A stretch of 60,353 nt of DNA from Macrostomum lignano (taxonomy: Eukaryota). Location: positions 1 to 60,353 of the forward strand of contig NIVC01004110.1 of assembly GCA_002269645.1 (NCBI GenBank), written 5' to 3'. Shown piece after piece: positions 6,501 through 51,409 of this stretch. Each line of letters starts with the position of its first letter. Position 1 is the stretch's first letter. Made by a program: the position numbers and the translations under genes. The notes beneath the pieces are model-generated. The model was not told the origin of the DNA, did no database searches, and worked only from the letters and a program-made list of their open reading frames with translations.

Positions 6501-9212
6501 ACCCTGCTGTTCCTCGTCTGACATCCTGCTTTATCCTACTGACACCATGCTGTTCCTCGTCTGACATCCTGCTTTATCCTACTGACACCCTGCTGTTCCT
6601 CGTCTGACATCCTGCTTTATCCTACTGACACCCTTCTGTTCCTCGTCTGACATCCTGCTTTATCCTACTGACACCCTGCTGTTCCTCGCCTGACATCCTG
6701 CTTTATCCTACTGACACCATGCTGTTCCTCGTCTGACACCCTGCTTTATCCTACTGACACCCTGCTGTTCCTCGTCTGACATCCTGCTTTATCCTACTGA
6801 CACCCTGCTGTTCCTCGTCTGACATCCTGCTTTATCCTACTGACACCCTTCTGTTCCTCGTCTGACATCCTGCTTTATCCTACTGACACCCTTCTGTTCC
6901 TCGTCTGACATCCTGCTTTATCCTACTGACACCATGCTGTTCCTCGTCTGACATCCTGCTTTATCCTACTGACACCATGCTGTTCCTCGTCTGACATCCT
7001 GCTTTATCCTACTGACACCCTGCTGTTCCTCGTCTGACATCCTGCTTTATCCTACTGACACCCTTCTGTTCCTCGTCTGACATCCTGCTTTATCCTACTG
7101 ACACCCTGCTTGATCCTACTGACACCCTGCTTGACTCCCCTGACACCCTGCTTGATCCTCTTGACACCCTGCTTGAACCTGCTGACACCTTGCTTGATCC
7201 TACTGTCACCCAGTTCTATCTTTCTGATACCTAGTTTGTCGATCCTGACACCCAGTTTGTCGATCCTGACACCCAGTTTGTCGATCCTGACACCCATTTT
7301 GTCGATCCTGACACCCAGTTTGTCGATCCTGACACCCAGTTTGTTGATCCTGACACCCAGCTTGTCGAATATCGTTACCTCTCACCTGACGGCTCTCAAT
7401 AGAAAAAATATATTTCTATTCATTTTGAATCTCGGATCTCCAGGTGCTGTTCGACCCGGCGCACTTCCTCTCGCCGCACGGTCTCCGGTGCACATCCCGG
7501 CTGCTCAGCCGGGAGGCCCGGGACTGCGACAACGCCAAGGACGCGCCGTGTCGGCCAGTCGGACGGGTGAGCATCGTCAGCCTGCCGTGGAACTACCTGG
7601 TGCTGGAGGCGCTGAAGTGCTGGGAGGCGGCCTACGGCCAGCAGCTGCAGCTGGACTATCCCACCGGGTCCGGGATGCGGCACTGCCTGAACGACATCAT
7701 TGTGGACATTTCCCGACGCCTGATGAGCATCTTCGACAATTTTGGTGAGCAGCGGCCGTTCGCAAGATTCAGGTATAGGTTTAGATTTAGGTTCAGTTTT
7801 CAGATTTAGGTTCAGTTTTCAGATTTAGGTTTAGTTTTCAGATTTAGGTTCAGTTTTCAGATTTAGGCTCAGTTTTCAGATTTAGGTTCAGTTTTCAGAT
7901 TTAGGTTCAGTTTTCAGATTTAGGCTCAGTTTTCAGATTTAGGTTCAGTTTTCAGATTTAGGCTCAGTTTTCAGATTTAGGTTCAGTTTTCAGATTTAGG
8001 TTCAGTTTTCAGATTTAGGTTCAGTTTTCAGATTTAGGTTCAGTTTTCAGATTTAGGCTCAGTTTTCAGATTTAGGTTCAGTTTTCAGATTTAGGTTCAA
8101 TTTTCAGATTTAGGTTCAGTTTTCAGATTTAGGTTCAGTTTTCAGATTTAGGTTCAGTTTTCAGATTTAGGTTCAGTTTTCAGATTTAGGTTCAGTTTTC
8201 AGATTTAGGTTCAGTTTTCAGATTTAGGCTCAGTTTTCAGATTTAGGCTCAGTTTTCAGATTTAGGTTCAGTTTTCAGATTTAGGTTCAGTTTTCAGATT
8301 TAGGTTCAGTTTTCAGATTTAGGTTCAGTTTTCAGATTTAGGTTCAGTTTTCAGATTTAGGTTCAGTTTTCAGATTTAGGTTCAGTTTTTAGATTTAGGT
8401 TCAGTTTTCAGATTTACGTTCAGTTTTTAGATTCAGATTCAGATTTAGATCTAGGTTTAGGTTTAGCTTTCGAATTAGTTTTTTGATTTAAGTTCAGTTT
8501 TTAGATTTTTAGATCTAGGATCACTTTTTAGATTTAGGTTCAGGTTTCACATTTAGGTTCAGGTTTAGATTTAGTTTCAGGTTAGGATTTAGTTTCAGTT
8601 ATAGATTTTTAGGTTCAGGTTTAGATTTAGGTTCAGGTTAGGATTTAGGTTTAAGTTCAGATTTAGGTTCAGGCAAAGGTTCTTTTTTGGTCAGGTTTAG
8701 ATTTAGGTTTAGGTTCAGGTTTTTCGAGGTCAGGTTGAGATCAACTTCAGGGATAGGTTCTCCCGATTGAACGATAGACGGATATTCACCCTGAGGTTTA
8801 CTTAGAATGAGCGGATGTTCGCTGATTGAGAAGTCGGAGCCAGAGAAGTCGGCAGAATGTGCGCAACTCAGAGCTGCTTGCCTTGATTTGCCCGAAGCCC
8901 CCCAAACTGCGCCACCCTTCAGACGAGGACGCGCTGATGCTCCGCGAATACTACGAAGCTACCAGCGGCCGAGGCGTGGGCGGCCAGCGCACAGGCTGGA
9001 GTGGCGTCATCGCCAACATCGCCGAGAATCTGAGCCGTCAGCCGACTTTGGCGGTGCTCACGAAGCCAGAACTGCCGCGGACAGTCGGGCAGATCCTGCC
9101 GCGCAACTCGGTAGTGCACGGGTTCCGGGAGAGTCTGCGCAGCTCCATCAAGCTGGACGAGTTCACGCCTGAGCTCAGCTTCGACTGGGACAACGATGAA
9201 GATGAGGATTGA
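536..9212 (+). CDS. Divergent YMR196W-like glycoside hydrolase family 63 protein, multi-exon; the 5' start is not resolved
   Basis: Exons approx 536-825, 1126-1425, 2921-3075, 3224-3843, 4288-4547, 5927-6381, 7444-7744, ~8806/8872-9212. Translations match the family motifs in order: DHW-x8-RSSAY, FDIRFELAKE, LIVHG, VPDKWARPEPAGWEHGLH (cf. MPDKWEYPWFAAWDLAFH), EPPVW (cf. NPPVH), WWLLMRRD..DGGILGLRH (cf. WWVNRKD..EGGFLGLDN), FLSPHGLR, NYLVLEAL..DYPTGSG, REYY..GRGVGGQRTGWSG (cf. YEYF..GRGLGASHQTGWTG). AATAAA near 9266. Apparent 1-bp indels near 1340, 4290 and 6353. A possible extra exon segment lies at 3076-3175. Confidence 0.85.
846..1103. repeat. 22-bp intronic minisatellite (GATTCTAGTTGTGGCGCTGTCT)n
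   Basis: About 11 tandem copies in intron 1 of the GH63-like gene. Confidence 0.95.
1586..2880. repeat. 12-bp intronic minisatellite (AAACAGTGCCCY)n
   Basis: About 105 copies. The long CPKQ/ALNS ORFs here are repeat artefacts. Confidence 0.97.
3869..4258. repeat. 19/22-bp intronic minisatellite (CTCAGGTCCTCACCAATCA)n
   Basis: 22-bp variants at the 5' end and 19-bp units afterwards. Confidence 0.95.
4590..5840. repeat. 16-bp intronic minisatellite (GACTCTCCACCTGTTC)n
   Basis: About 77 copies, pyrimidine-rich on the sense strand. Confidence 0.97.
6412..7365. repeat. 43-bp minisatellite grading into 21-bp units
   Basis: Period 43 (for example 6421 and 6464) up to ~7100, then 21-bp TGACACCC.. 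units. Confidence 0.95.
7770..8720. repeat. 19-bp intronic minisatellite (GATTTAGGTTCAGTTTTCA)n, degenerate after ~8420
   Basis: Tandem copies in the last intron of the GH63-like gene. Confidence 0.95.
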
Positions 9213-9412
9213 GAGGCTGGTACTGGGACTTGCACTGTTTTTTTGAGTAGACAAGTTTTTAAAATAATAAAATGAGATTTAATTTTTTCGCTTAGAAACC
9301 AAGCATTTGTTTGCATGAGGAAATTATTGCTCAGCTTTCAGTGTAAGAGCCACTTTTTTATCTGTTCGGGTCTCCTTGGTGTGCTGTTGGGGGCATTTTG
9401 GTGTGCTGTTGG

Positions 9413-10336
9413 ATCCCAGTATACCCACGCTCAGTATACTGCGGTCAACTCCAGTGTTTTCCACAATGAAGTTCTCGCCATCAGCTCTTGCACTGCAGAG
9501 CTTCTCGCCACTGGCGTAACCGGTAAGAGCATCATTTTCCATTCGGACAGCCAAGCTACCTTGCACGCCATCAGTGGCTGCAGCGCAGCACCAACTCTGC
9601 TACAGTCCTCGACTGTATCAAACTTCTTAATATGTTGGGCTTCACCAACAAAATTAAACTCAAGTGGGTTCTGGGGCATGGTGCAATCCCTTGCAAAAGC
9701 TGGCGCCTCCGGCTCCTCTCTCGGGCCTGAATCCGTTGTCCCGATTCCCGGCTGTGTCATCAACTCGCGCATCAAGGCGTGGATCAGGACCCAGCATCGC
9801 TCAGCCTGGGTGAACTGCACTACCTGCAGGCAATCCAGAGGCGCTGTCCCTCAGCCTTCTCACCAGCTCTGGAAGCTCCTCCTGCGCCTCTCGCGAAGAG
9901 ACATCTGGGCTGCCACCATGACCCTCTCAGGTCACGGTTGCTTCTCCAGGCACCAGTACCTGCAGGGCAACGCCACCAACGCCATCTGCAGTTTTTGTAA
10001 CTCAGGTGACGAAACCGCTGAACATTTTGTCAGCATCTGTCCCGCCTTTACGCGAGCCAGACTCACTTACCTCGGGCCACACACATCTATTATTGAAGCG
10101 TGCAAACCCGAAAACTTTAATCAGCTCATGCGCTACCTCCGGGCCATCCACAGGACTGAACTCTCCTTTCCAGAGAGCACCATAGCTGCTGGCGACACTG
10201 GGAGACCTCCCTGGGCGGCGCCAACCCTTCGTCCATAGCGACGCGTCTGCCGTTCAGGGATTGGCGGAATGGGCGTCTGCGCCTTCCCGCTGTGTCCCCT
10301 CCGGGACAGCCCTGCAGCTAAGTCAAGTAAGTCAAG
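9413..10336 (+). mobile_element. 5'-truncated non-LTR retrotransposon with RNase H and C-terminal CCHC region (I/R1/Loa group)
   Basis: RNase H motif IIFHSDSQATLHAI, alternative-frame KWVLGH, and SGHGCF..CSFCNSGDETAEHFVSICPAF. Short tail CTAAGTCAAGTAAGTCAAG. Flanked by TGCTGTTGG at 9404-9412 and 10337-10345 (TSD). Confidence 0.9.
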
Positions 10337-10510: not shown

Positions 10511-11223
10511 GCGAGAAAAGTTATACACGCCTCCCTTGCAAACTAGTAGGGATTCCGGTTCATTACAAAATATTCAAGCCTGCTCTCAAACTGCATGAGA
10601 CAGAAATTAACATACGCTTGGGGGTTTATTCTATTTGATTTTTAGGTGGGCTGGGGCACCGCAGGTGCAGCGCAGGTATGTAATTAGGGCGACCTCATGC
10701 AAAAATACGCGGGCACTTCCAACACTGGTATTCTCCCTCCGATTGCCATTAGCTGTCCTAATTGGTTGATAGGGGCTTTCCCAGCTGGCTTTCCAAACTG
10801 CTGGGTAAACTTTACCTGTGCTAATTTCTTTGCCCAGCTGGAGGGCCGCAGTAAAATAAGCAGTCGTTGAGTCGGCGAGGAACACCTGGAGTGGGACGTC
10901 ATGAACTCTGCCCCGAATTCTTTTCTCGGTCAAATTCCTGGGATTTCTTTGCCAAGAAATTTTCCCGCTAGGCGAAATCAAAACTGCTTTCTGAAATCAC
11001 AAAAATTTAATTTATTCGACTCAGAAACCAACTTTTGGGGCCCTCGGAGTCCGCACTGAAGCTAAATTATTTTTCACTTCAATAACGAAAACACGAAATC
11101 TGCTTCAGGGCAAAGTGCAAAACAAATTCGACTCAATGTACGTTTGAGAATGTTCACGAACTCCATCAGCCTAAGCTCTCCTCTCAGACTCGAAGTGACA
11201 GCTGCGAGTGTCCGCCAGCACCA

Positions 11224-12414
11224 TCAGCCAATATTTTCCTGCAGGACTCGCAGCCGCATCTGCGGGTCGATGTACACCTCGTCCAGCTGCCGGGAGAGCG
11301 TGTTGTGCTCACACATCCACTCGCCAGGACTGCGTCGATAGCGCAGCCTGCGGGCCGCTAGAGCCGACATCCGGTAGAACGACACGGCCTGGAAGCAGCT
11401 CTCCACCTTCACCGGCGGCAGGCTGCGCGGCGCGTTCCAAAGCGACTTCTCGTAGTCGACCACCGGGTACTTGGTGTCCTCGCCGAAGCGCTTGTTCAGG
11501 TGGAAGCTCAGCGTGCACGGGTCGTAGAGGTGGCTGTCCTGAGTAGTGTGGGCGCACAGCTGCTGCAGCTTGGGCTTGGCCGCAAAGTAGTAAAGTCCCT
11601 GGGCGATGCTGTCCAGATCCCAGTCCTGCCAGGTGATGTCCGGGTCCACGATCAGCAGGAGCGATGCCCGGTCGGCCAGGTGCTCGTAGATGTAGTCCAG
11701 GTACAGGTTGCGGAGGGCGGACATGATCAGGCCGCGCTCGACCTCCTCGGAGAAGGTGCGGTTTATTTGGACACCTGGCAGGTGCTGGCGGCCGCTGCCG
11801 TAGCGGACGTTGATTTCGCACGGCAGCGCAGAGTTGACCCGGCCGCAGCCCAGCAGCCGCACATTCGGGTCGGTCAGCGTCATGTTGTACAGGAAGCTGC
11901 GAGTCGAGTCTGTCGAGTCGTTCTCGACCAGCACCAGCCAGGAATCGTTGAACAGAGCTCTGAGGCGCTGGACATTGTGCATGGTGCTCGGCAGGCCGTC
12001 CATGCCGTTGCGCACGGTGGCTGCCACCACCGCCGACTGGCTGTGGAGCCACGCCCTGCCGGCCGCTGCTCGGCGCGAGCGGCTCCTCTCGGCTTCGGAG
12101 AGCCGCATGAGCGGCAGCAGCAGGCCGGGCCTGTCGAAGCGGTACAGCGACTCGCGCATGCCGCGGACCAGCCGGTTGTAGTTCTCCTCGAAGGTGCCGT
12201 CACGCATTCGCTCTGACAGTCCGGAGATTTTATTATCAAAACCGGGGCGCTTCAGCTGCAGGGCGGTCAGCAGTAGGGTCACGGCGACGGCCACCGTGGT
12301 GATGCCTATTAGGACATTTCGCTCAGTCAACCAGAGAACGCGGCGATTTCCGAGTTGTCTGGAGCAGAAGAGGCTCCCGGAAGTGTTGATCAGACGAGGT
12401 CCAGTAATTAGCAT
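11224..12414 (-). CDS. Intronless type II membrane GT-A glycosyltransferase, CAP59/GT69 mannosyltransferase-like, 396 aa
   Basis: Uninterrupted ORF. One N-terminal TM segment (NVLIGITTVAVAVTLLLTALQL). Motifs LVLVENDSTDST, MSALRNLYLD, DxD motif IVDPDI, LYDPCTL, PVKVESCFQAVSFY and CEHNTL. Minus-strand AATAAA near 11011-11016. The family label is tentative. Confidence 0.8.
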   Translation of the reverse strand: MLITGPRLINTSGSLFCSRQLGNRRVLWLTERNVLIGITTVAVAVTLLLTALQLKRPGFDNKISGLSERMRDGTFEENYNRLVRGMRESLYRFDRPGLLLPLMRLSEAERSRSRRAAAGRAWLHSQSAVVAATVRNGMDGLPSTMHNVQRLRALFNDSWLVLVENDSTDSTRSFLYNMTLTDPNVRLLGCGRVNSALPCEINVRYGSGRQHLPGVQINRTFSEEVERGLIMSALRNLYLDYIYEHLADRASLLLIVDPDITWQDWDLDSIAQGLYYFAAKPKLQQLCAHTTQDSHLYDPCTLSFHLNKRFGEDTKYPVVDYEKSLWNAPRSLPPVKVESCFQAVSFYRMSALAARRLRYRRSPGEWMCEHNTLSRQLDEVYIDPQMRLRVLQENIG

Positions 12415-12535
12415 GGTTCAAATATCTTAAAAAAATATTATCAATGCTATTTTAGGTTCCATATGCTTCTGCACTGGCATGTCTTGAAGATATAGAAGGC
12501 GAACTTTGGTTTGCAAGCCTTCTGATTTGACCGCC

Positions 12536-12912: not shown

Positions 12913-13290
12913 TTCCTTGAGCCATGGCATCTCAGTGACTGTCCCCTGAGCCATGGCATCTGAGTGTCTGTCCCTTGAGCCATGGCATCTCAGTGGCTGT
13001 CCCTTGAGCCATGGCATCCCAATGACTGTCCCCTGAGCCATGGCATCTGAGTGTCTGTCCCTTGAGCCATGGCATCTCAGTGGCTGTCCCTTGAGCCATG
13101 GCATCTCAGTGACTGTCCCCTGAGCCATGGCATCTGAGTGTCTGTCCCTTGAGCCATGGCATCTCAGTGGCTGTCCCTTGAGCCATGGCATCCCAATGAC
13201 TGTCCCTTGAGCCATGGCATCTCAGTGACGACTGTCCCTTGAGCCATGGCATCTCAATGACGACTGCCCCTTGAGCCATGGCATCTCTTT
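12913..13290. repeat. 29-bp minisatellite (CCCTTGAGCCATGGCATCTCAGTGACTGT)n
   Basis: About 12 copies with a recurring variant pattern; each unit contains the palindrome GCCATGGC. Confidence 0.95.
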
Positions 13291-25798: not shown

Positions 25799-28700
25799 AT
25801 GGCTGGCTTTACCCCCAAACCATCTGGTAGTCTATTTGGCGGGACTAGCTCTGCTGGGTCTCCATTTTCTGGCTTTGGCGCTCCGTCAACTGCCGCTGGA
25901 ACTGCCACTACAGGATTTTCTGGCTTTGGCACTCCGTCAACTGCCGCTGGAACTGCCACTACAGGATTTTCTGGCTTTGGTGCTCCGTCAACTGCCGCTG
26001 GAACTGCCACTACAGGATTTTCTGGCTTTGGCACTCCATCAACTGCCGCTGGAACTGCCACCACAGGATTTTCTGGCTTTGGTGCTCCGTCAACTGCCGC
26101 TGGAACTGCCACTACAGGATTTTCTGGCTTTGGCACTCCGTCAACTGCCGCTGGAACTGCCACTACAGGATTTTCTGGCTTTGGTGCTCCGTCAACTGCC
26201 GCTGGAACTGCCACTACAGGATTTTCTGGCTTTGGCACTCCATCAACTGCCGCTGGAACTGCCACCACAGGATTTTCTGGCTTTGGTGCTCCGTCAACTG
26301 CCGCTGGAACTGCCACCACAGGATTTTCTGGCTTTGGTGCTCCGTCAACTGCCGCTGGAACTGCCACCACAGGATTTTCTGGCTTTGGTGCTCCGTCAAC
26401 TGCCGCTGGAACTGCCACCACAGGATTTTCTGGTTTTGGTGCTCCGTCAACTGCAGCTGGAACTACCACAGGTACTTTGCCAGGCTTTGGAGGCTTCGGC
26501 GCTGCATCTTCCACCGCAGCCAGTACAGCTGGAGCGAACCCGTCAGCCTTCGCCGGTGTCGGCAGCGCTGGGACCGGCTTCTCGGGCTTCGGGTCCAGCG
26601 CAGCTGCCACACCTGCCGCTTCCACCGCCACCACAGCCGGCTCTCTGACCGGATTCAGCCTGTCTTCAGCGACTTCCACTGCAGCTCCGGCCACTGCGGC
26701 ATTCAGCGGCTTCGGACAGCAGACAGCAGCTTCCACCGCCGCCCCGGCGGCTGGCAGTGCCACCTCTTCAGTGGCTGCCACCACAGCTGCCAGCCTAATC
26801 GGCTTTGGCCTCTCCGCAGCCTCTGCCTCGGGCGGCTCTACGTTGCCATCGTTTGGCGCCAGCGCATTCAGCGCAGCGAAGCCGGCGGTAGCCACTACCG
26901 CTGCTAAATCTGTGGGATTTCAGCTGCCCGCAGCGTCATCGGCCTCGGCTGCTGCGGTGCCCGCCGCCTCGTCTGCGGCAGCCGCTGCTACCAGCAGCTC
27001 CGGAGCGGCCGGGCAGACCAGCGGCAGCCTCACCTATCAGCAGCTGGACGAGCTGGTCAGCCAGTGGACTGCCGAGCTGGTGGATCACGAGAGACAGTTC
27101 CTGGAGGAGGCGGCGCGGATCAACGCTTGGGACCGCTATTTGCTGGAGAACGGGAAGAAGGTTAGCAAGGTTTATTAAGCATGGTAGCACTCACCATGGC
27201 AGAGACATGATTTATATACATGCTACTTAGTATCCAAAGAATTAGCTTCAAATTCTCCCCTATAATAGCCGGGGCTCTGAGCACTGCCGCAAATCAAACA
27301 AGCCAGCTGGCAGGCAAGCAGTTTGGCCCAGTTCCGCCCAGTTCCGCCCACGCCCACAGTAAACATTGTGACTTGCCCCGCCCGAAATCGCACAAGTCCC
27401 TCCCCTGGTCAATTGCATAATGCTAATGCAATTATCTCAGTTTGCACTACTTACAGCAACAGTAGTATATGTACAGTATAGCTAGCATACTTCTGTTTCG
27501 CCTAAATCCGGCACTGCCTGACCACACCTTTGCCCTCAGATTGGCGAGCTGCAGGAGCAGGTGGACCGGGCGGTCTCAGACCAGACCAGGCTGGACCAGG
27601 AGCTCGAGTTCCTGGCCTCGCAGCAGCAGGAGCTGGAAGAGGCCCTGGCGCCCCTGGAGCAGGCGGTGCAGGCCATGCCGCCCACCGGCCAGTCGCAGGC
27701 GGACAGGGAGCGGGAGGCGCTGTTCAACCTGACGGAGAGTCTGGACTCTGAGCTGCGGCATTCGATGCAGGAGGTTCGAGAAGCTGTGGAATATGTCAAC
27801 AGCCAGCAGGGCGGCGGCGGCTCCGGCAGCAGCGGCGAGGGGGACGCCATGGGCAAAATCAGCCGGATTTTGGGTGCCCACCTCGAGTCGCTGCAGTGGA
27901 TCACCCACACCACGCGTGAGTTGGCGATTGGGATATGGTGGGTTTTTCGCTGGGTAAAGAACTTTTAACACGGCGGAGTTTGTGTGCAGTTTTTGTTGTT
28001 GTCAGGGTGTGGGGTTGTCAGGGTGTGGGGTTGTCAATGTGTGTTGTGTTGGCAGGGTGAGGTTGTCAAGGTGTGAAGTTGTCAACGTGAGGTTGTCAGG
28101 GTGAGAGGTTGTCAGGGTGAGGTTGTCAGGGTGTGGGGTTGTCAGGGTGTGGAGTTGTCAGGGTGAGAGGTTGTCAGGGTGTTAGGTTGTCAGGGTGTGG
28201 GTTGACAATGTGTGTTGTGTGGGCAGGGTGTGAGGTTGTCAGGGTGAGAGGTTGTCAGGGTTCGGGGTTGTCAATGTGTGTTGTTTTGTCAGGGTGTGAG
28301 TTTGTCAGGGTGTGAGGTTGTCAGGGTGTGGGGTTGTCAATGTGTGTTGTGTTGGCAGGGTGTGAGGTTGTCAGGGTGAGAGGTTGTCAGGGTGTTAGGT
28401 TGTCAGGGTGAGAGGTTGTCAGGGTGTTAGGTTGTCAGGGTGAGAGGTTGTCAGGGTGTGGGGTTGTCAATGTGTGTTGTGTTGGCATGGTGTAATGTTG
28501 TCAGGGTGAGAGGTTGTCAATGTGTGTTGTGTTGGCAGGGTGTGAGGTTGTCAGGGTTCGGGGTTGTCAATGTGTGTTGTTTTGTCAGGGTGTGAGGTTG
28601 TCAGGGTGTTAGGTTGTCAGGGTGTGGGGTTGTCAATGTGTGTTGTGTTGGCAGGGTGTGAGGTTGTCAGGGTGAGAGGTTGTCAGGGTGTTAGGTTGTC

Positions 28701-30084
28701 AGGGTGAGAGGTTGTCAGGGTGTTAGGTTGTCAGGGTGAGAGGTTGTCAGGGTGTGGGGTTGTCAATGTGTGTTGTGTTGGCATGGTGTAATGTTGTCAG
28801 GGTGAGAGGTTGTCAATGTGTGTTGTGTTGGCAGGGTGTGAGGTTGTCAGGGTGAGAGGTTGTCAGGGTGAGAGGTTGTCAGGGTGTGAGTTTGTCAGGG
28901 TGTGAGGTTGTCAGGGTGTGGGGTTGTCAGGGTGAGAGGTTGTCAGGGTGTGGGTTGACAATGTGTGTTGTGTGGGCAGGGTGTGAGGTTGTCAGGGTTC
29001 GGGGTTGTCAATGTGTTTTGTTTTGTCAGGGTGTGAGGTTGTCAGGGTGAGAGGTTGTCAGGGTGTTAGGTTGTCAGGGTGTGGGGTTGTCAATGTGTGT
29101 TGTGTTGGCAGGGTGTAATGTTGTCAGGGTGAGAGGTTGTCAATGTGTGTTGTGTTGGCAGGGTGAGAGGTTGTCAGGGTGTTAGGTTGTCAAGGTGAGA
29201 GGTTGTCAATGTGTGTTGTTTTGTCAGGGTGTGAGGTTGTCAGGGTGAGAGGTTGTCAGGGTGTGGGTTGACAATGTGTGTTGTGTGGGCAGACAATGTG
29301 TGTTGTGTGGGCAGGGTGTGAGATTGTCAGGGTTCGGGGTTGTCAATGTGTGTTGTTTTGTCAGGGTCTGAGTTTGTCAGGGTGTGAGGTTGTCAGGGTG
29401 AGAGGTTTTCAGGGTGTTAGGTTGTCAGGGTGTGGGGTTGTCAATGTGTGTTGTGTTGGAAGGGTGCGAGGTTGTCAGGGTGAGAGGTTGTCAGGGTGTT
29501 AGGTTGTCAGGGTGAGAGGTTGTCAGGGTGTGGGGTTGTCAATGTGTGTTGTGTTGGCAGGGTGTGGGGTTGTCAGGGTGAGAGGTTGTCAGGGTGTTAG
29601 GTTGTCAGGGTGAGAGGTTGTCAGGGTGTGGGGTTGTCAATGTGTGTTGTTTTGTCAGGGTGTGAGTTTGTCAGGGTGTGAGGTTGTCAGGGTGAGAGGT
29701 TGTCAGGGTGTTAGGTTGTCAGGGTGTGGGGTTGTCAATGTGTGTTGTTTTGTCAGGGTGTGAGTTTGTCAGGGTGTGAGGTTGTCAGGGTGAGAGGTCG
29801 TCAATGTGTGCTGGGTTGTCAGGGTGTGAGGTTGTCAGGGTGTGGGGTTGTCAATGTGTGAGGTTGTCAGGGTGTGGGGTTGTCAGTGTGTGCTGGGTTG
29901 TCAGGATGTGGTGGATATCTTGCCAGCATAGTTGTCAGGTGTGCAGTGGTCAGGGTATTTGTATATTGGTTGTCAAAGTGTTCAGCTAAGAATGATGAAC
30001 AATAATTTGATTGCAGAATCCCTTCAGAGAAAGATGGACTCGCTGTCGGAAGAAATCAAACTGAAGCAGCGCAGCTTTATTTGA
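25799..30084 (+). CDS. nup62: Nucleoporin p62 (FG repeats plus Nsp1-like C-terminal coiled coil), complete copy
   Basis: Exons 25799-27160, 27540-27915 and 30017-30084 with consistent phases. LTYQQLDELVSQW..FLEEAARINAWDRYL..RLDQELEFLASQQQELEEAL..LESLQWI. AATAAA near 30240. Confidence 0.95.
25861..26470 (+). repeat. Coding 51-bp minisatellite, 12 copies (GFSGFG[A/T]PSTAAGTATT), in nup62 exon 1
   Basis: Exact 51-bp period from 25865 to 26426. Confidence 0.97.
28000..29935. repeat. Complex G/T-rich minisatellite (GTTGTCAGGGTGAGAG-type) in nup62 intron 2; copies at ~36452-37858 and ~41050-43230
   Basis: Tandem ~16-bp units interspersed with AATGTGTGTTGTG blocks. Confidence 0.95.
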
Positions 30085-33335: not shown

Positions 33336-34009
33336 GTTAAGAATGAGTTGCGGATTAAAGATGGATTAAGGATGGTTAAGTCTGAGCTAAATGAGTATTA
33401 AGGATGAGTTGCGATCATAGATTGAGAAGATTCTCAGACGTCACAAGTAGAGTTGCTAACTAATAGCAATATTAGACTACATGGATGAAGTTAAACATGT
33501 GCCGCAGACTTATCAATTACTAATGAATAGAAAATGGTTTCAGTCAGAGGGTCACTTTTGTCTAAATTCATCCAAGCCTTCTAATTAAAGAATGCGCCGG
33601 ATTTCCGGGTTGCCAATAGCAACAGAAAATCAGCCTTAATAAATAATTTATAAATCTGTCCTATTCCAAATCGGATTCATTTTCAGCAGACAAAATAGCT
33701 GGACAACTAAAGCCTATGTAATCGGTCTCATTAGCTTAATTTATTAATGAGATACTCTAAACAAACCCTCAGACAGTGGTTGCCAAGGCGACTGGAAGGA
33801 ATAGAAAGGGAAAATGATATCTATGTGACTGGCTAATTAGCATAATTAGCGACACGGCGACGCTATTGCATAAACACAGATTGCCCCGTAACTTGGCCGA
33901 GGAGTAACGGGCATTCGGTCTCCAGTAGTCAAGGGAACGCCTAGCAAAAACAGCTGCCTCGCTAGCAGCCCCAAATCTATTCCATCTGAAAAAAAACAGA
34001 AAAACAGAC

Positions 34010-34378
34010 AGAGGGGAAGTCAAGCGGAAGGGAAGACATGCTAAGGGAAGCCAGGTAAATAAGAAGACAGGTAGAGGGAAAGGCAGGCAGAGGGGAAGAC
34101 AGGCAAGGAAAGACAGGCAAAGGGAAAGATAGGTAGAGGGGAAGACAGGTAGAGGGGAAGACAGGTACAGAGGAAGACAGGTAGAGAGGAAGACAGGGAG
34201 CGGGGAAGACAGGTACAGAGGAAGACAGGTAGAGAGGAAGACAGGTAGAGAGGAAGACAGGTACAGAGGAAGACAGGTAGAGAGGAAGACAGGGAGAGGG
34301 GAAGACAGGTAGAGAGGAAGACAGGGAGAGGGTAAGACAGGGAGAGAGGAAGACAGGGAGAGGGGAAGACAGGTAGAG
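34010..34378. repeat. Purine-rich ~16-bp repeat (AGAGGAAGACAGGTAG-type); copies at ~38610-38977 and, longer, at ~47445-47947
   Basis: Tandem units in the last tmem145 intron. Confidence 0.92.
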
Positions 34379-35084
34379 ACTCCCAATCCCAAGACACACT
34401 ACACACTGGAGCACAAAAGGAGTGAGGTAAAGTGGCGGAGATGACAGTGAACAGAAGCTGTAAATTTTGCTCACCTGCGAAGTCTTGATATGAAAGGGGA
34501 AGTTGGTGTTGGACACGGTCGGCCTGGTGATGACCAGATAGAACAGTTGGGCAGCGAACAGGATGCCCAGCTCAACAAAGTTGACGACCTTCTCTCTCAT
34601 GTAGTCGGGCACCCTGGTGATGTTGATGGCCACGGCAATGGGGGTGCTGAGCAGCCACAGAGAGAAGAAGGCCGCCATTGGCGCGTAGAACGAGCGCTTC
34701 CTGCGGTGCCTGACGAACGAGTAGCCGCAGCCGGCGATGTAGAACAACCAGGCGGCCAGCATCAGGGCGATGAGGCCGTAGCCCGGCTGGCTCTCCCACC
34801 TGTACAGCACCAGCGCCGGGTCGAAGGTGGCCGCCTCCACGGCGAAGAGGGCGACGTAGCCGACTGCGAATGCCGTCATGAAGACGGAGATGAGCGCCGT
34901 GGCCCAGGTGGGCAGCCGGCCGCAGGTGATTGTGTAGCCGAGGCTCAGCAGCAGCAGCATCATCACGAATGCGATGCTGGCCAGTGAGTGCAGCGCCGCG
35001 GCTGCGGGTGGGGTCATTTGAGGTCAGGCTGAGTGCATTGGGTCATGCAGAATAGATGAACTGCGATTGATTTTCTGATGTCAC

Positions 35085-36367: not shown

Positions 36368-39073
36368 GTGAGTTGGCGATTGGGATATGGTGGGTTTTTC
36401 GCTGGGTAAAGAACTTTTAACACGGCGGAGTTTGTGTGCAGTTTTTGTTGTTGTCAGGGTGTGGGGTTGTCAGGGTGTGGGGTTGTCAATGTGTGTTGTG
36501 TTGGCAGGGTGAGGTTGTCAAGGTGTGAAGTTGTCAACGTGAGGTTGTCAGGGTGAGAGGTTGTCAGGGTGAGGTTGTCAGGGTGTGGGGTTGTCAGGGT
36601 GTGGAGTTGTCAGGGTGAGAGGTTGTCAGGGTGTTAGGTTGTCAGGGTGTGGGTTGACAATGTGTGTTGTGTGGGCAGGGTGTGAGGTTGTCAGGGTGAG
36701 AGGTTGTCAGGGTTCGGGGTTGTCAATGTGTGTTGTTTTGTCAGGGTGTGAGTTTGTCAGGGTGTGAGGTTGTCAGGGTGTGGGGTTGTCAATGTGTGTT
36801 GTGTTGGCAGGGTGTGAGGTTGTCAGGGTGAGAGGTTGTCAGGGTGTTAGGTTGTCAGGGTGAGAGGTTGTCAGGGTGTTAGGTTGTCAGGGTGAGAGGT
36901 TGTCAGGGTGTGGGGTTGTCAATGTGTGTTGTGTTGGCATGGTGTAATGTTGTCAGGGTGAGAGGTTGTCAATGTGTGTTGTGTTGGCAGGGTGTGAGGT
37001 TGTCAGGGTTCGGGTTGTCAATGTGTGTTGTTTTGTCAGGGTGTGAGGTTGTCAGGGTGTTAGGTTGTCAGGGTGTGGGGTTGTCAATGTGTGTTGTGTT
37101 GGCAGGGTGTGAGGTTGTCAGGGTGAGAGGTTGTCAGGGTGTTAGGTTGTCAGGGTGAGAGGTTGTCAGGGTGTTAGGTTGTCAGGGTGAGAGGTTGTCA
37201 GGGTGTGGGGTTGTCAATGTGTGTTGTGTTGGCATGGTGTAATGTTGTCAGGGTGAGAGGTTGTCAATGTGTGTTGTGTTGGCAGGGTGTGAGGTTGTCA
37301 GGGTGAGAGGTTGTCAGGGTGAGAGGTTGTCAGGGTGTGAGTTTGTCAGGGTGTGAGGTTGTCAGGGTGTGGGGTTGTCAGGGTGAGAGGTTGTCAGGGT
37401 GTGGGTTGACAATGTGTGTTGTGTGGGCAGGGTGTGAGGTTGTCAGGGTTCGGGGTTGTCAATGTGTTTTGTTTTGTCAGGGTGTGAGGTTGTCAGGGTG
37501 AGAGGTTGTCAGGGTGTTAGGTTGTCAGGGTGTGGGGTTGTCAATGTGTGTTGTGTTGGCAGGGTGTAATGTTGTCAGGGTGAGAGGTTGTCAATGTGTG
37601 TTGTGTTGGCAGGGTGAGAGGTTGTCAGGGTGTTAGGTTGTCAAGGTGAGAGGTTGTCAATGTGTGTTGTTTTGTCAGGGTGTGAGGTTGTCAGGGTGAG
37701 AGGTTGTCAGGGTGTGGGTTGACAATGTGTGTTGTGTGGGCAGACAATGTGTGTTGTGTGGGCAGGGTGTGAGATTGTCAGGGTTCGGGGTTGTCAATGT
37801 GTGTTGTTTTGTCAGGGTCTGAGTTTGTCAGGGTGTGAGGTTGTCAGGGTGAGAGGTTTAGGGATGGGGGTTGAGGATTAGGGGTGGGGGTTGAGGATTA
37901 GGGGTGGGGGTTGAGGATTAGGGATGGACTAAGGGTTAAGAATGAGTTGCGGATTAAAGATGGATTAAGGATGGTTAAGTCTGAGCTAAATGAGTATTAA
38001 GGATGAGTTGCGATCATAGATTGAGAAGATTCTCAGACGTCACAAGTAGAGTTGCTAACTAATAGCAATATTAGACTACATGGATGAAGTTAAACATGTG
38101 CCGCAGACTTATCAATTACTAATGAATAGAAAATGGTTTCAGTCAGAGGGTCACTTTTGTCTAAATTCATCCAAGCCTTCTAATTAAAGAATGCGCCGGA
38201 TTTCCGGGTTGCCAATAGCAACAGAAAATCAGCCTTAATAAATAATTTATAAATCTGTCCTATTCCAAATCGGATTCATTTTCAGCAGACAAAATAGCTG
38301 GACAACTAAAGCCTATGTAATCGGTCTCATTAGCTTAATTTATTAATGAGATACTCTAAACAAACCCTCAGACAGTGGTTGCCAAGGCGACTGGAAGGAA
38401 TAGAAAGGGAAAATGATATCTATGTGACTGGCTAATTAGCATAATTAGCGACACGGCGACGCTATTGCATAAACACAGATTGCCCCGTAACTTGGCCGAG
38501 GAGTAACGGGCATTCGGTCTCCAGTAGTCAAGGGAACGCCTAGCAAAAACAGCTGCCTCGCTAGCAGCCCCAAATCTATTCCATCTGAAAAAAAACAGAA
38601 AAACAGACAGAGGGGAAGTCAAGCGGAAGGGAAGACATGCTAAGGGAAGCCAGGTAAATAAGAAGACAGGTAGAGGGAAAGGCAGGCAGAGGGGAAGACA
38701 GGCAAGGAAAGACAGGCAAAGGGAAAGATAGGTAGAGGGGAAGACAGGTAGAGGGGAAGACAGGTACAGAGGAAGACAGGTAGAGAGGAAGACAGGGAGC
38801 GGGGAAGACAGGTACAGAGGAAGACAGGTAGAGAGGAAGACAGGTAGAGAGGAAGACAGGTACAGAGGAAGACAGGTAGAGAGGAAGACAGGGAGAGGGG
38901 AAGACAGGTAGAGAGGAAGACAGGGAGAGGGTAAGACAGGGAGAGAGGAAGACAGGGAGAGGGGAAGACAGGTAGAGACTCCCAATCCCAAGACACACTA
39001 CACACTGGAGCACAAAAGGAGTGAGGTAAAGTGGCGGAGATGACAGTGAACAGAAGCTGTAAATTTTGCTCAC

Positions 39074-39599
39074 CTGCGAAGTCTTGATATGAAAGGGGAA
39101 GTTGGTGTTGGACACGGTCGGCCTGGTGATGACCAGATAGAACAGTTGGGCAGCGAACAGGATGCCCAGCTCAACAAAGTTGACGACCTTCTCTCTCATG
39201 TAGTCGGGCACCCTGGTGATGTTGATGGCCACGGCAATGGGGTGCTGAGCAGCCACAGAGAGAAGAAGGCCGCCATTGGCGCGTAGAACGAGCGCTTCCT
39301 GCGGTGCCTGACGAACGAGTAGCCGCAGCCGGCGATGTAGAACAACCAGGCGGCCAGCATCAGGGCGATGAGGCCGTAGCCCGGCTGGCTCTCCCACCTG
39401 TACAGCACCAGCGCCGGGTCGAAGGTGGCCGCCTCCACGGCGAAGAGGGCGACGTAGCCGACTGCGAATGCCGTCATGAAGACGGAGATGAGCGCCGTGG
39501 CCCAGGTGGGCAGCCGGCCGCAGGTGATTGTGTAGCCGAGGCTCAGCAGCAGCAGCATCATCACGAATGCGATGCTGGCCAGTGAGTGCAGCGCCGCGG
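39074..39599 (-). pseudogene. tmem145: Isolated duplicate of the tmem145 penultimate exon (one G fewer at 39239-39242)
   Basis: Matches 34475-35001 except for the 1-bp deletion. Confidence 0.9.
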
Positions 39600-40186: not shown

Positions 40187-43100
40187 TATTTGCTGGAGAA
40201 CGGGAAGAAGGTTAGCAAGGTTTATTAAGCATGGTAGCACTCACCATGGCAGAGACATGATTTATATACATGCTACTTAGTATCCAAAGAATTAGCTTCA
40301 AATTCTCCCCTATAATAGCCGGGGCTCTGAGCACTGCCGCAAATCAAACAAGCCAGCTGGCAGGCAAGCAGTTTGGCCCAGTTCCGCCCAGTTCCGCCCA
40401 CGCCCACAGTAAACATTGTGACTTGCCCCGCCCGAAATCGCACAAGTCCCTCCCCTGGTCAATTGCATAATGCTAATGCAATTATCTCAGTTTGCACTAC
40501 TTACAGCAACAGTAGTATATGTACAGTATAGCTAGCATACTTCTGTTTCGCCTAAATCCGGCACTGCCTGACCACACCTTTGCCCTCAGATTGGCGAGCT
40601 GCAGGAGCAGGTGGACCGGGCGGTCTCAGACCAGACCAGGCTGGACCAGGAGCTCGAGTTCCTGGCCTCGCAGCAGCAGGAGCTGGAAGAGGCCCTGGCG
40701 CCCCTGGAGCAGGCGGTGCAGGCCATGCCGCCCACCGGCCAGTCGCAGGCGGACAGGGAGCGGGAGGCGCTGTTCAACCTGACGGAGAGTCTGGACTCTG
40801 AGCTGCGGCATTCGATGCAGGAGGTTCGAGAAGCTGTGGAATATGTCAACAGCCAGCAGGGCGGCGGCGGCTCCGGCAGCAGCGGCGAGGGGGACGCCAT
40901 GGGCAAAATCAGCCGGATTTTGGGTGCCCACCTCGAGTCGCTGCAGTGGATCACCCACACCACGCGTGAGTTGGCGATTGGGATATGGTGGGTTTTTCGC
41001 TGGGTAAAGAACTTTTAACACGGCGGAGTTTGTGTGCAGTTTTTGTTGTTGTCAGGGTGTGGGGTTGTCAGGGTGTGGGGTTGTCAATGTGTGTTGTGTT
41101 GGCAGGGTGAGGTTGTCAAGGTGTGAGGTTGTCAACGTGAGGTTGTCAGGGTGAGAGGTTGTCAGGGTGAGGTTGTCAGGGTTTGGGGTTGTCAGGGTGT
41201 GGAGTTGTCAGGGTGAGAGGTTGTCAGGGTGTTAGGTTGTCAGGGTGTGGGTTGACAATGTGTGTTGTGTGGGCAGGGTGTGAGGTTGTCAGGGTGAGAG
41301 GTTGTCAGGGTTCGGGGTTGTCAATGTGTGTTGTTTTGTCAGGGTGTGAGTTTGTCAGGGTGTGAGGTTGTCAGGGTGTTAGGTTGTCAATGTGTGTTGT
41401 GTGGGCAGGGTGTGAGGTTGTCAGGGTTCGGGGTTGTCAATGTGTGTTGTTTTGTCAGGGTGTGAGGTTGTCAGGGTGTTAGGTTGTCAGGGTGTGGGGT
41501 TGTCAATGTGTGTTGTGTTGGCAGGGTGTGAGGTTGTCAGGGTGAGAGGTTGTCAGGGTGTTAGGTTGTCAGGGTGAGAGGTTGTCAGGGTGTGAGTTTG
41601 TCAGGGTGTGAGGTTGTCAGGGTGTGGGGTTGTCAGGGTGAGAGGTTGTCAGGGTGTGGGTTGACAATGTGTGTTGTGTGGGCAGGGTGTGAGGTTGTCA
41701 GGGTTCGGGGTTGTCAATGTGTTTTGTTTTGTCAGGGTGTGAGGTTGTCAGGGTGAGAGGTTGTCAGGGTGTTAGGTTGTCAGGGTGTGGGGTTGTCAAT
41801 GTGTGTTGTGTTGGCAGGGTGTAATGTTGTCAGGGTGAGAGGTTGTCAATGTGTGTTGTGTTGGCAGGGTGAGAGGTTGTCAGGGTGTTAGGTTGTCAAG
41901 GTGAGAGGTTGTCAATGTGTGTTGTTTTGTCAGGGTGTGAGGTTGTCAGGGTGAGAGGTTGTCAGGGTGTGGGTTGACAATGTGTGTTGTGTGGGCAGAC
42001 AATGTGTGTTGTGTGGGCAGACAATGTGTGTTGTGTGGGCAGGGTGTAATGTTGTCAGGGTGAGAGGTTGTCAATGTGTGTTGTGTTGGCAGGGTGTGAG
42101 GTTGTCAGGGTGAGAGGTTGTCAGGGTGTTAGGTTGTCAGGGTGAGAGGTTGTCAGGGTGTGAGTTTGTCAGGGTGTGAGGTTGTCAGGGTGTGGGGTTG
42201 TCAGGGTGAGAGGTTGTCAGGGTGTGGGTTGACAATGTGTGTTGTGTGGGCAGGGTGTAAGGTTGTCAGGGTTCGGGGTTGTCAATGTGTTTTGTTTTGT
42301 CAGGGTGTGAGGTTGTCAGGGTGAGAGGTTGTCAGGGTGTTAGGTTGTCAGGGTGTGGGGTTGTCAATGTGTGTTGTGTTGGCAGGGTGTAATGTTGTCA
42401 GGGTGAGAGGTTGTCAATGTGTGTTGTGTTGGCAGGGTGAGAGGTTGTCAGGGTGTTAGGTTGTCAAGGTGAGAGGTTGTCAATGTGTGTTGTTTTGTCA
42501 GGGTGTGAGGTTGTCAGGGTGAGAGGTTGTCAGGGTGTGGGTTGACAATGTGTGTTGTGTGGGCAGACAATGTGTGTTGTGTGGGCAGACAATGTGTGTT
42601 GTGTGGGCAGGGTGTGAGGTTGTCAGGGTTCGGGGTTGTCAATGTGTGTTGTTTTGTCAGGGTCTGAGTTTGTCAGGGTGTGAGGTTGTCAGGGTGAGAG
42701 GTTGTCAGGGTGTTAGGTTGTCAGGGTGTGGGGTTGTCAATGTGTGTTGTGTTGGAAGGGTGTGAGGTTGTCAGGGTGAGAGGTTGTCAGGGTGTTAGGT
42801 TGTCAGGGTGAGAGGTTGTCAGGGTGTGGGGTTGTCAATGTGTGTTGTGTTGGCAGGGTGTGGGGTTGTCAGGGTGAGAGGTTGTCAGGGTGTTAGGTTG
42901 TCAGGGTGAGAGGTTGTCAGGGTGTGGGGTTGTCAATGTGTGTTGTTTTGTCAGGGTGTGAGTTTGTCAGGGTGTGAGGTTGTCAGGGTGAGAGGTTGTC
43001 AGGGTGTTAGGTTGTCAGGGTGTGGGGTTGTCAATGTGTGTTGTTTTGTCAGGGTGTGAGTTTGTCAGGGTGTGAGGTTGTCAGGGTGAGAGGTCGTCAA

Positions 43101-43380
43101 TGTGTGCTGGGTTGTCAGGGTGTGAGGTTGTCAGGGTGTGGGGTTGTCAATGTGTGAGGTTGTCAGGGTGTGGGGTTGTCAGTGTGTGCTGGGTTGTCAG
43201 GATGTGGTGGATATCTTGCCAGCATAGTTGTCAGGTGTGCAGTGGTCAGGGTATTTGTATATTGGTTGTCAAAGTGTTCAGCTAAGAATGATGAACAATA
43301 ATTTGATTGCAGAATCCCTTCAGAGAAAGATGGACTCGCTGTCGGAAGAAATCAAACTGAAGCAGCGCAGCTTTATTTGA
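40187..43380 (+). pseudogene. nup62: 5'-truncated nup62 duplicate: exon 1 tail, exon 2 (40590-40965) and exon 3 (43313-43380)
   Basis: Near-identical to the parental 3' part; lacks the FG domain and start codon. Confidence 0.9.
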
Positions 43381-48600: not shown

Positions 48601-50642
48601 AGTGCATTGGGTCATGCAGAATAGATGAACTGCGATTGATTTTCTGATGTCACGTGAGGTCATGCAGGCTAAATGATTGGGGATTGGGTGTCCTGAGGTC
48701 ACTTCAGGTCATGTAGGCTAAATAATTGGGGATTGGGTGTCTTGAGGTCACTTAAGGTCATGCAGGGTAAATAATTGGGGATTGGGTGTCTTGAGGTCAC
48801 TTCAGGTCATGTAGGCTAAATAATTGGGGATTGGGTGTCTTGAGGTCACTTCAGGTCATGCAGGCTAAATGATTGGGGATTGGGTGTCCTGAGGTCACTT
48901 CAGGTCAAGCAGGCGATTGGGGTGTGTCTTGAGGTCACCTGAGGTCAAGCAGGCTATATGATTGGCGATTGGGTGTCTTGAGGTCACCTGAGGTCAAGCA
49001 GGCTATATGATTGGCGATTGGGTGTCTTAAGGTCACTTCAGGTCATGCAGGCTAAATGATTTGGGGTTGGGAGTCTTGAGGTCACGGTCACGTGAGGTCA
49101 TGCAGACTATATGATTGGCGATTGGGTGTCTTGGGAGTCTTACACATATAGTGCAGCACTGTGGACTTGTTCCCAGTCGCCCCGTAGCTGATGTAGGCGA
49201 TGCAAGTCAGGGTGATGGAGAACAGCAGCAGAACGGCAGACAACAGAAAAATCTTGTAGGTCGTGTGAAGCAGCTGCTTCTTTCGTAGGCGAACTGAAAT
49301 TTAAATAAAAGTTTGGCTAATCTTGACGGGTGGCAACTGAGCAACTGAGGATCTGGGGGCTCAGCAACTGAGGACCTGGGAGGCTGGCCCAGCAACTGAG
49401 GATCTGGAAGGCTGGCCCAGCAACTGAGGATCTGGGAGGCTGGCCCAGCAACTGAGGATCTGGGAGGCTGGCCCAGCTACTGAGGAACTGGGAAACTGGC
49501 TCAACAACTGAGGATCTGGGAGGCTGGCCCAGCAACTGAGGATCTGGGAGGCTGGCCCAGCAACTGAGGATCTGGGAGGCTGGCCCAGCAACTGAGGATC
49601 TGGGAGGCTGGCCCAGCAACTGAGGAACTGGGAAGCTGGCTCAACAACTGAGGATCTGGGAGGCTGGCTCAGCAACTGAGGATCTGGGAGGCTGGCTCAG
49701 ATACTGAGGATCTGGGGGGGGGGCTCAGCAACTGAGGATCTGAAAGGCTGGCTCAGCAACTGAGGATCTGGGGGGGCTCAGCAACTGAGGATCTGAAAGG
49801 CTGGCTCAGCAACTGATGATCTGGGGGGCTCAGCAACTGAAGATCTGGGAGGCAAGGTTAGAATTCCAAAGCCAAGGTCTGGGGTTCCCAGAAACACAGA
49901 CGATCTGAAAACTCACTGGCAATCAGGACGGCCAGTACAAGAAGAGCCGACTGCAGAAAGAAGAAGCCAATGTTGAACTCCAGGATGTCTGAAAATAAAG
50001 TTCATATTTTTATTGTCACAAAAGTGGCAAGCAAACTGGAGAACTGGACACTCACAGATTTCGTCAGCTGAGAAGTGCTCTCTGAACAGGTTGCCCGGTT
50101 CGCCGTTCCTCAGCCACATGTCATAGTGCAGCAGCAGGCCCTGCTCGGCGGGTGGGGATAGGAATGAGTCATGGGCTGCGACAGGCAGACAGAAAAATAC
50201 TGAGACAGACAGACAGACCGACACAGACAGACAGACAAACAGATAAACAGACAGACAGACAGACAGACAGAAACAGACAGACAGGCAGACAGACAGGCAG
50301 ACAGACAGAAACAGACAGACAGGCAGACAGACAGAAACAGACAGACAGGCAGACAGAAACAGACAGACAGGCAGACAGACAGAAACAGACAGACAGACGG
50401 ACAGACAGAAACAGACAGACAGGCAGACAGACAGACAGGCAGACAGACAGAAACAGACAGACAGGCAGACAGACAGAAACAGACAGACAGGCAGACAGAC
50501 AGAAACAGACAGACAGGCAGACAGACAGAAACAGACAGACAGGCAGACAGACAGAAACAGACAGACAGACAGACAGAAACAGACAGACAGGCAGACAGAC
50601 AGACAGACAGACAGAAACAGACAGACAGGCAGAAAGACAGAA

Positions 50643-50691
<49 letters not shown>

Positions 50692-50904
50692 AACAGACAG
50701 ACAGGCAGACAGACAGAAACAGACAGACAGACAGACAGACAGAAACAGACAGACAGGCAGACAGACAGAAACAGACAGACAGGCAGACAGACAGAAACAG
50801 ACAGACAGACAGACAGAAACAGACAGACAGGCAGACAGACAGACAGACAGACAGAAACAGACAGACAGGCAGAAAGACAGAAACAGACAGACAGACAGAC
50901 AGAA

Positions 50905-50945
<41 letters not shown>

Positions 50946-51372: not shown

Positions 51373-51409
<37 letters not shown>

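Follow-up and report, generated by a model that had tools for sequence, protein, structure and literature searches.

How does an animal come to carry an intact gene for a glycosyltransferase that seems foreign to the standard animal toolkit? The question is raised by contig NIVC01004110.1 of the flatworm Macrostomum lignano (assembly GCA_002269645.1), analysed here over its full 60,353 nucleotides (the window), which encodes on its reverse strand a single-exon protein of 396 amino acids resembling the CAP59 enzymes of glycosyltransferase family 69 (GT69). An earlier note, made from the letters of this DNA, had proposed an acquired and domesticated enzyme. This proposal is supported by the monophyly of the worm copies, their integration beside animal genes, an intron in one of them, conserved catalytic residues and a ratio of nonsynonymous to synonymous substitution rates (dN/dS) of about 0.2–0.3. 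We put at roughly 70% the probability that the gene is a horizontally acquired, then domesticated and expanded glycosyltransferase of a viral-type subfamily related to CAP59/GT69. The donor was probably a giant virus (Nucleocytoviricota) or another compact-genome carrier of the viral-type gene. We infer the direction and donor of this transfer, as we do the subcellular location and metal dependence of the enzyme.

An intact gene with a predicted membrane anchor

The open reading frame (ORF) comprises 396 codons and a TGA stop, begins with ATG and runs without a stop or frameshift (Table 1); an in-frame TGA at 12418–12420, two codons 5′ of the ATG, fixes the start codon. All five motifs quoted in the earlier note were located, with RNLYLD at residues 235–240 and VESCF at residues 337–341 joining the ENDSTD, DPD and CEH motifs of the table. 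The gene had also been placed among intron-rich genes, and the adjacent ORFs are indeed partial exons of Nup62-like and GPR180/TMEM145-like genes. Because M. lignano genes have on average 4.9 introns (PMC5730564), an intron-free coding sequence of 1.2 kb stands out. The description of an intact intronless gene holds, but this is not a single gene: it is one of at least six family loci.

The protein contains a single hydrophobic segment (residues ~33–53; Kyte–Doolittle 19-residue maximum 2.47 at residue 34), which coincides with an AlphaFold helix at residues 26–53. These predictions support the type II topology claimed before, with the N terminus inside and the catalytic domain outside, as in Golgi glycosyltransferases. 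Read from the sequence, an acceptor-like site (TTTTTTTAAG) before the ATG and an AATAAA after the stop would fit host-type mRNA processing; trans-splicing affects 38.8% of M. lignano genes (PMC5730564). An overlapping-ORF artefact was considered and rejected, the antisense ORFs at 11208–12216 being by-products of the GC-rich coding strand.

Fold, family and conserved residues

The sole Pfam match of the window protein is PF11735 (CAP59_mtransfer, CAZy GT69), with an E value of 4.7 × 10−5 and a sub-threshold score of 23.6 bits over profile positions 5–232 of 242; the M. lignano paralogs score 17 bits. PF11735 is matched at E ≤ 10−3 by 33 of 40 relatives (best E 5.8 × 10−12), and linking homologues lie above its cut-off (P0012, 32.8 bits; P0191, 40.2; P0017, 42; P0193, 44.7). 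A scan of the window protein against NCBIfam gave no match, and a PDB sequence search returned nothing relevant, with no PDB chain matched. The designation CAP59/GT69-like is therefore upheld at the level of the superfamily, where PF11735 is the only Pfam match and most relatives share it; beyond that it has to be loosened, as the match is sub-threshold and a giant-virus subfamily resembles the protein far more closely than the largely fungal model does.

AlphaFold2 was run on a 40-sequence alignment, and the resulting model has a mean predicted local distance difference test score (pLDDT) of 80.6, with 212 residues at ≥90 and values mostly >90 over residues 110–300, and its catalytic domain displays an alternating β/α pattern. 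Foldseek comparison with the PDB retrieved GT-A enzymes, namely COLGALT1 (GT25), RmlT, GalNAc-transferases and GT2 synthases, with E values down to 8.5 × 10−9; no GT69 structure was present among the PDB sequence-search or Foldseek matches. The modelled fold is that of a GT-A glycosyltransferase.

Across 40 worm, viral and environmental homologues, the invariant columns are R135, E164, S167, D169, T171, R172, C199, M231, R235, D259, D298, C368, E369 and H370, and D257 is conserved in at least 90% of the sequences. The window copy keeps 19 of 19 family-conserved residues. All six M. lignano paralogs retain DPD, and CEH is lost in P0003 only. By analogy, ENDSTD would likely be a nucleotide-binding acidic loop and DPD a DXD-type metal/diphosphate-binding motif, with H370 as the probable third metal ligand, as in GT-A enzymes that use DXD plus His. 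D257, D259 and H370 may be the counterparts of catalytic residues in fungal GT69 enzymes. From the invariant residues and the positions of the motifs on the model, we infer a metal- and nucleotide-sugar-dependent transferase.

Relatives in giant viruses

An exhaustive HMMER profile search over 1.84 billion representative proteins yielded 781 homologues at E ≤ 10−3, which places the PF11735 match far beyond chance; details come from the best 150 of these 781 matches. Among the matches listed, all those scoring ≥324 bits belong to M. lignano, and the next score ≤134 bits and are proteins of ~300–350 amino acids (~320 being typical) from metagenome assemblies. With only Macrostomum-type sequences above 134 bits, the search is consistent with the view that such enzymes lie outside the standard animal toolkit. 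A word-indexed search, with either the single query or the 40-sequence profile, returned Macrostomum sequences only and is too insensitive for this family.

The nearest environmental homologues sit on contigs that look giant-viral in all four cases inspected (L002, L003, L062 and L064), being dense and intron-free with genes on both strands. L002 and L003 carry genes for Rpb5, a PIF1 helicase, RING proteins, a GT25 enzyme and a Fapy glycosylase, as well as a collagen-like gene; L062 holds mainly ORFans and a PolB fragment; and L064 has a SWIB gene, an intein-bearing ribonucleotide reductase (RNR) large subunit and a tandem pair of CAP59-like genes. This pair, at 7376–9474, adjoins the RNR large subunit, which is split by a LAGLIDADG intein, and indicates that the family duplicates within viruses too.

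Named viruses encode the gene as well. An IMG/VR scan found 41 loci, among them giant-virus metagenome-assembled genomes (MAGs) and complete Marseilleviridae genomes. Exact look-up of the ORFs at these loci identified the ‘putative glycosyltransferase’ of Marseillevirus marseillevirus, Melbournevirus/Cannes 8 virus, Tokyovirus A1, Lausannevirus, Tunisvirus/Insectomime virus, Noumeavirus, Brazilian marseillevirus and Kurlavirus, and these exact matches across viruses mark it as a conserved Marseilleviridae gene. Virus names came from this exact look-up alone; cluster look-ups for 20 of the environmental homologues yielded hardly any names. Searches by tblastn against Marseilleviridae isolates gave E values of 7 × 10−16 to 2 × 10−14 at 27–33% identity over the best segment (in some, only the first half of the domain), and the best giant-virus MAG match reached 4 × 10−26. 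Among the viral models of BFVD, Foldseek ranked a glycosyltransferase of Marseillevirus LCMAC102 first (A0A481YUL9; E 3 × 10−22, template modelling (TM) score 0.79), followed by Sylvanvirus and ChoanoV1 proteins. Against a giant-virus profile (n = 19 sequences), the window protein (P0001) reaches 169 bits; a bacterial/phage-like profile (n = 33 sequences) gives 123 bits, and Pfam CAP59 the 23.6 bits noted above.

Bacterial matches are weaker: a scan of GTDB genomes gave ten, in bacterial MAGs, of which at least one is probably mis-binned. This contig, labelled ‘MAG: bacterium’ (L045, RGVZ01000129.1), shares one glycosyltransferase gene with the giant-virus assembly GVMAG-S-3300012000-65 (L017) and thus probably belongs to a giant virus. 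Between them, the IMG/VR, bacterial-MAG, BFVD and exact Marseilleviridae matches confirm what the earlier note had stated, that related bacterial and giant-virus enzymes exist.

Integration, expansion and selection in the host genome

The coding sequence is 100% identical in nucleotides to an annotated gene on a second M. lignano contig of the same assembly, NIVC01002945.1, with flanks ~99% identical. Its neighbours in the window are a Nup62/Nsp1-like nucleoporin, three GPR180/TMEM145-like exon copies and a Tim17-like ORF, and many minisatellite and microsatellite arrays typical of M. lignano DNA surround them. The independent contig, the flanking animal genes and repeats and the contigs of the paralogs, which also lie beside animal genes, establish physical integration in the host genome, and contamination was rejected on these grounds. 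No other viral gene was found among the ten large window ORFs scanned, so the glycosyltransferase is an isolated gene and not part of an endogenous viral island.

In M. lignano the family occupies at least six loci, the window copy and at least five others on contigs of 37–832 kb, and its proteins are annotated only as hypothetical. P0002 (on L001), P0003 (L058, beside CHD1), P0007/P0155/P0156 (L060) and P0009 (L061, beside a caspase/ankyrin gene) have no introns. P0004 (L059, beside two cyclophilin genes) has one, a GT–AG intron of 677 nucleotides (nt) just past the codon that corresponds to residue 224 in the window protein; this gain makes contamination hard to uphold and points to a long stay in the host genome. 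The deepest worm paralogs share 41–46% identity.

Base composition and substitution patterns also bear signs of domestication. GC content at third codon positions (GC3) is 0.59–0.86 across the paralogs and 0.84 in the window copy, at or above that of the two GPR180-like exons (0.68–0.71); the repeat-rich Nup62-like exon has 0.48. Nei–Gojobori dN/dS over residues 90–359 is 0.20–0.30 for most pairs and 0.45 and 0.77 in two, and the N-terminal tail and stem give larger values than the catalytic domain does. These rough ratios indicate that the catalytic domain is under purifying selection. Expression is suggested indirectly, and not copy by copy, by the gene models of the assembly, which derive from a genome-guided RNA sequencing (RNA-seq) transcriptome from which novel transcripts with low reads per kilobase per million mapped reads were discarded (PMC5730564).

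Some members are decaying, and some lie outside the reference assembly. P0003 (L058, 10001–11212) has a divergent C terminus without the E–H of CEH and, judged by its sequence, is probably frameshifted or inactive. P0006, annotated ‘RING-type E3’, is a 646-residue chimeric model that includes a degraded copy of the glycosyltransferase domain. Nested among the worm paralogs are a few short Macrostomum-like fragments (P0005, P0008, P0010 and P0011; 57–67% identity) that come from environmental or unlabelled runs. A Macrostomum-type homologue in Logan run SRR31628434 (L056, 1–968; 57–61% identity, 57% GC) is split over two frames, either as a frameshifted pseudogene or through an assembly error, and shows that the worm-type clade exists beyond the reference M. 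lignano assembly.

Phylogeny

A neighbour-joining (NJ) tree with Kimura correction was built from 205 sequences over 295 trimmed columns with 30 bootstraps. All 30 bootstraps recover the worm sequences as a single clade, and in 25 of 30 their sister is P0012, a gene on a 1,342-bp, tightly packed metagenome scaffold of 37% GC whose converging neighbour lies 56 bp away; the Mimivirus early-promoter motif (AAAATTGA) was not found on this scaffold. Together, the worm clade and P0012 branch at the base of a 161-sequence clade that holds all the giant-virus sequences. Because identities are ~25% and the worm branch is long, the tree says only that the worm clade arose once and is allied to the viral-type group, and does not single out a donor lineage.

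Origin of the gene

Several points weigh against a viral-type, GT69-related acquisition as the explanation, or limit how precisely it can be drawn. The Pfam score of the window protein falls below the PF11735 gathering threshold of 28.8 bits, Marseilleviridae isolates alone do not match PF11735, and on sequence grounds ‘GT69’ is a superfamily-level resemblance rather than a demonstrated membership. In the tree, the worm clade is a long branch that is not nested in any named viral lineage, its NJ distances were taken at ~25% identity, its sister P0012 carries no taxonomic label, and fungal, amoebal and other eukaryotic GT69 sequences are absent. Most database matches are likewise unlabelled and the best 150 of 781 were listed, so distant animal or protist homologues are possible. 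Finally, dS is near saturation and GC3-biased, which makes dN/dS rough, and two pairs reach 0.45–0.77.

Part of this evidence could be taken to mean that the gene came from a bacterium, phage or protist and that giant viruses obtained their copies separately. Homologues occur in bacterial MAGs (Bacteroidota, Lewinella, Bordetella and Sphingomonas-like) and on high-GC phage-like contigs, some have DUF4214, which is a common bacterial domain, the sister sequence is unlabelled, and eukaryotic donors lie outside the sampling. Such a donor nevertheless seems unlikely, as the worm proteins score 47 bits higher on the giant-virus than on the bacterial/phage-like profile and the top tblastn and BLASTP matches are giant-virus MAGs and contigs resembling nucleocytoplasmic large DNA viruses. 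Moreover, DUF4214 fusions are found in ChoanoV1 too, and the ‘bacterial’ L045 holds the same gene as the giant-virus L017, suggesting mis-binning. Vertical descent of an ancient GT69-type gene of eukaryotes that almost all other animals have lost is harder still to believe. It would need very many independent losses, and among the matches listed from the 1.84 billion proteins no other animal fell into the score gap that separates the worm paralogs from the viral group. The worm proteins, moreover, score 100–134 bits with single members of the viral-type subfamily and 169 with its profile, against 17–24 bits for Pfam CAP59, and five of the six copies are intronless despite the mean of 4.9 introns per gene; what speaks for vertical descent is that PF11735 is eukaryotic and mainly fungal, fungi being opisthokonts like animals, and that the worm family is old, with saturated dS and deepest paralogs at 41–46% identity.

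There is very little chance, in our estimate, that the window gene is a non-functional relic, that is, an unexpressed or decaying insertion or an artefact of assembly or contamination. Decay does occur in the family, as P0003 with its lost E–H, the degraded chimera P0006 and perhaps L056, split over two frames, testify, but the 1,191-nt ORF of the window is intact and keeps all family-invariant residues, dN/dS in the catalytic domain is below 1, an identical locus exists on an independent M. lignano contig with RNA-seq-derived gene models, and the gene sits amid animal genes and repeats of the host type. We therefore retain horizontal acquisition of a viral-type gene, followed by domestication and expansion, as the best explanation.

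Possible function and significance

If the gene was acquired horizontally, an ancestor of M. lignano would have taken it up, most probably from a giant virus, after which it would have turned into an ordinary gene of the host and multiplied to at least six diverged loci. The N-terminal anchor would place the catalytic domain in the lumen of the secretory pathway. There, D257/D259 and H370 would coordinate a divalent cation to which the sugar donor attaches through its diphosphate, and the ENDSTD loop would bind the nucleotide. The sugar would then be moved to a glycoprotein or glycolipid acceptor, giving a linkage that animals normally lack. Analogy with GT69 would make this a transfer of mannose from GDP-mannose with retention. 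However, GT69 specificity cannot be carried over to the worm enzyme because of the evolutionary distance (~20% identity) and because the viral homologues are uncharacterised; a surface or mucus glycan as the product, which the earlier note had envisaged, and mannosyl transfer as the route are speculation.

A bolder scenario, which we hold as tentative and rather doubtful, is that a giant virus donated a membrane-anchored glycosyltransferase to a bilaterian, and that the resulting family of at least six members builds a non-animal glycan epitope (for example, an α-mannosyl one) on glycoconjugates that are secreted or lie at the surface, for instance in mucus or in the secretions of adhesive glands or reproductive organs. 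If true, this would imply that giant viruses infect, or once infected, macrostomid flatworms, or that there was close contact with infected prey or symbionts.

To our knowledge, well-supported functional gene transfers from giant viruses to bilaterian animals are rare. The features that make the present case convincing are an intact gene, the expansion into a family, an intron acquired after arrival, purifying selection and clean integration beside animal genes. If confirmed, the transfer would have added a non-canonical glycosyltransferase to an animal secretory pathway and would hint at a past interaction of giant viruses with flatworm lineages. Even for the Marseilleviridae, which have the gene in their conserved core, the function of this enzyme subfamily is uncharacterised; it could be tested directly in M. 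lignano, a worm that is genetically tractable by RNA interference, transgenesis and in situ hybridisation.

Features and surroundings of the gene

Table 1 Features of the glycosyltransferase gene and its flanks, in window coordinates
Feature	Position	Strand	Basis
CAP59/GT69-like glycosyltransferase coding sequence, single exon, complete	11224..12414	-	ORF listing; PF11735 match
Predicted cytoplasmic N-terminal tail, residues 1–32, Arg-rich just before the anchor	12319..12414	-	Sequence reading; pLDDT <50 for residues 1–28
Predicted signal-anchor transmembrane helix, residues ~33–53	12256..12318	-	Hydropathy; AlphaFold helix 26–53
Predicted lumenal stem, residues 54–124, with flatworm-conserved ESLYRFDRPGLLLPLMRLS segment	12043..12255	-	Paralog alignments; partly low pLDDT
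Modelled GT-A catalytic domain, residues 125–396	11227..12042	-	AlphaFold model; Foldseek
ENDSTD, E164–D169, end of strand β2	11908..11925	-	40-sequence alignment
DPD, D257-P-D259, DXD-type motif, end of strand β4	11638..11646	-	Alignment; model strand 252–256
CEH, C368-E369-H370, near the C terminus	11305..11313	-	Family alignment
Candidate spliced-leader or 5′ untranslated region splice acceptor, poly-T plus AG (TTTTTTTAAG), 11 nt before the ATG	12426..12435	-	Sequence reading
Candidate polyadenylation signal AATAAA, ~208 nt 3′ of the stop	11011..11016	-	Sequence reading

The sequence on either side of the gene is largely repetitive. About 500 bp upstream of its start, a 29/87-bp tandem repeat at 12915–13287 produces a repetitive 164-residue ORF that is probably not a gene. 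About 1 kb downstream, an ATG-initiated ORF of 307 residues (9315–10238, + strand), Cys/His-rich towards its C terminus and with no Pfam match, may be a degraded mobile-element ORF. The nucleoporin ORF (25799–27178, + strand) ends in an Nsp1_C fragment, the C-terminal part of a Nup62-like protein (E 2 × 10−13), preceded by a 51-bp tandem repeat at 25864–26469 that probably encodes FG-type repeats; because the Nsp1_C match stops at the end of the ORF, the gene continues in another exon.

Further along, a 16-bp G/T-rich minisatellite (GTTGTCAGGGTGTGAG; GC skew ~0.75) forms three long arrays, at 27998–29910, 36450–37858 and 41048–43206. The GPR180/TMEM145-like exon copies at 33977–35017, 38576–39397 and 47411–48586, all on the − strand, are interleaved with these arrays and with repeated 49-bp and 16-bp arrays, an arrangement that is a local segmental duplication. 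An (AGAC)n microsatellite of ~3.1 kb at 50203–53334, whose + strand lacks T over ~2 kb (AT skew 1.0), yields spurious ORFs of >1,000 residues in several frames.

Comparison with known systems

The fungal GT69 enzymes, including Cryptococcus Cmt1/CAP59/CAP6, Neurospora GT69-2 and Aspergillus ClpA, make up the family of the worm protein’s sole Pfam match. They are known or putative GDP-mannose α-1,3-mannosyltransferases that act in the Golgi on capsule or glycosylphosphatidylinositol glycans (PMC12493134, PMC8092235); Neurospora GT69-2 localises to the Golgi (PMC8092235), and GT69 is predicted to adopt a GT-A fold (PMC8476585). The worm protein shares with them the predicted GT-A fold and the type II, Golgi-type organisation, in its case also predicted, but with 23.6 bits it stays under the 28.8-bit threshold of their profile and is far nearer to the viral subfamily. 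Structurally solved GT-A enzymes, among them COLGALT1 (GT25), Listeria monocytogenes RmlT, GT27 GalNAc-transferases and GT2 synthases, have the Rossmann-like GT-A core in common with it (Foldseek E 10−5 to 8.5 × 10−9) and, like it, a DXD-type acidic motif after β4; at 10–15% identity and TM scores of 0.35–0.46, the likeness is at fold level only.

The closest counterparts are the Marseilleviridae-type glycosyltransferases, such as those of Marseillevirus marseillevirus (YP_003407175.1), Tokyovirus A1 (YP_009254803.1) and Lausannevirus (YP_004347072.1). Like the worm protein, they consist of an N-terminal anchor and a GT-A domain of ~270 residues, and they share with it R135, E164, S167, D169, T171, R172, C199, R235, D259, D298 and C-E-H. 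The worm proteins are 60–80 residues longer, having a cytoplasmic tail and a longer stem with a flatworm-specific conserved segment, whereas the transmembrane segment of the viral homologues starts at residues 1–12. The worm genes also differ in residing in an animal nuclear genome, in their high GC3 and in the intron of one copy, and identity to the viral proteins is only ~25–31%. The viral homologues are biochemically uncharacterised and hence give no clue to the specificity of the worm enzyme; the family was not identified in the tokyovirus glycosyltransferase tables of PMC12866637.

We found no report of this transfer in the literature on horizontal gene transfer in Macrostomum or on giant-virus glycosyltransferase transfer to Metazoa, or under the gene identifiers of five paralogs. 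Both the protein superfamily and this type of event, in which a eukaryote fixes a viral-type glycosyltransferase, are already known. Virus-to-eukaryote glycosyltransferase transfers are documented in the literature on giant-virus gene exchange. The acquisition proposed here would be an event of the same kind, with a bilaterian animal as the recipient and an expansion of the gene into a family.

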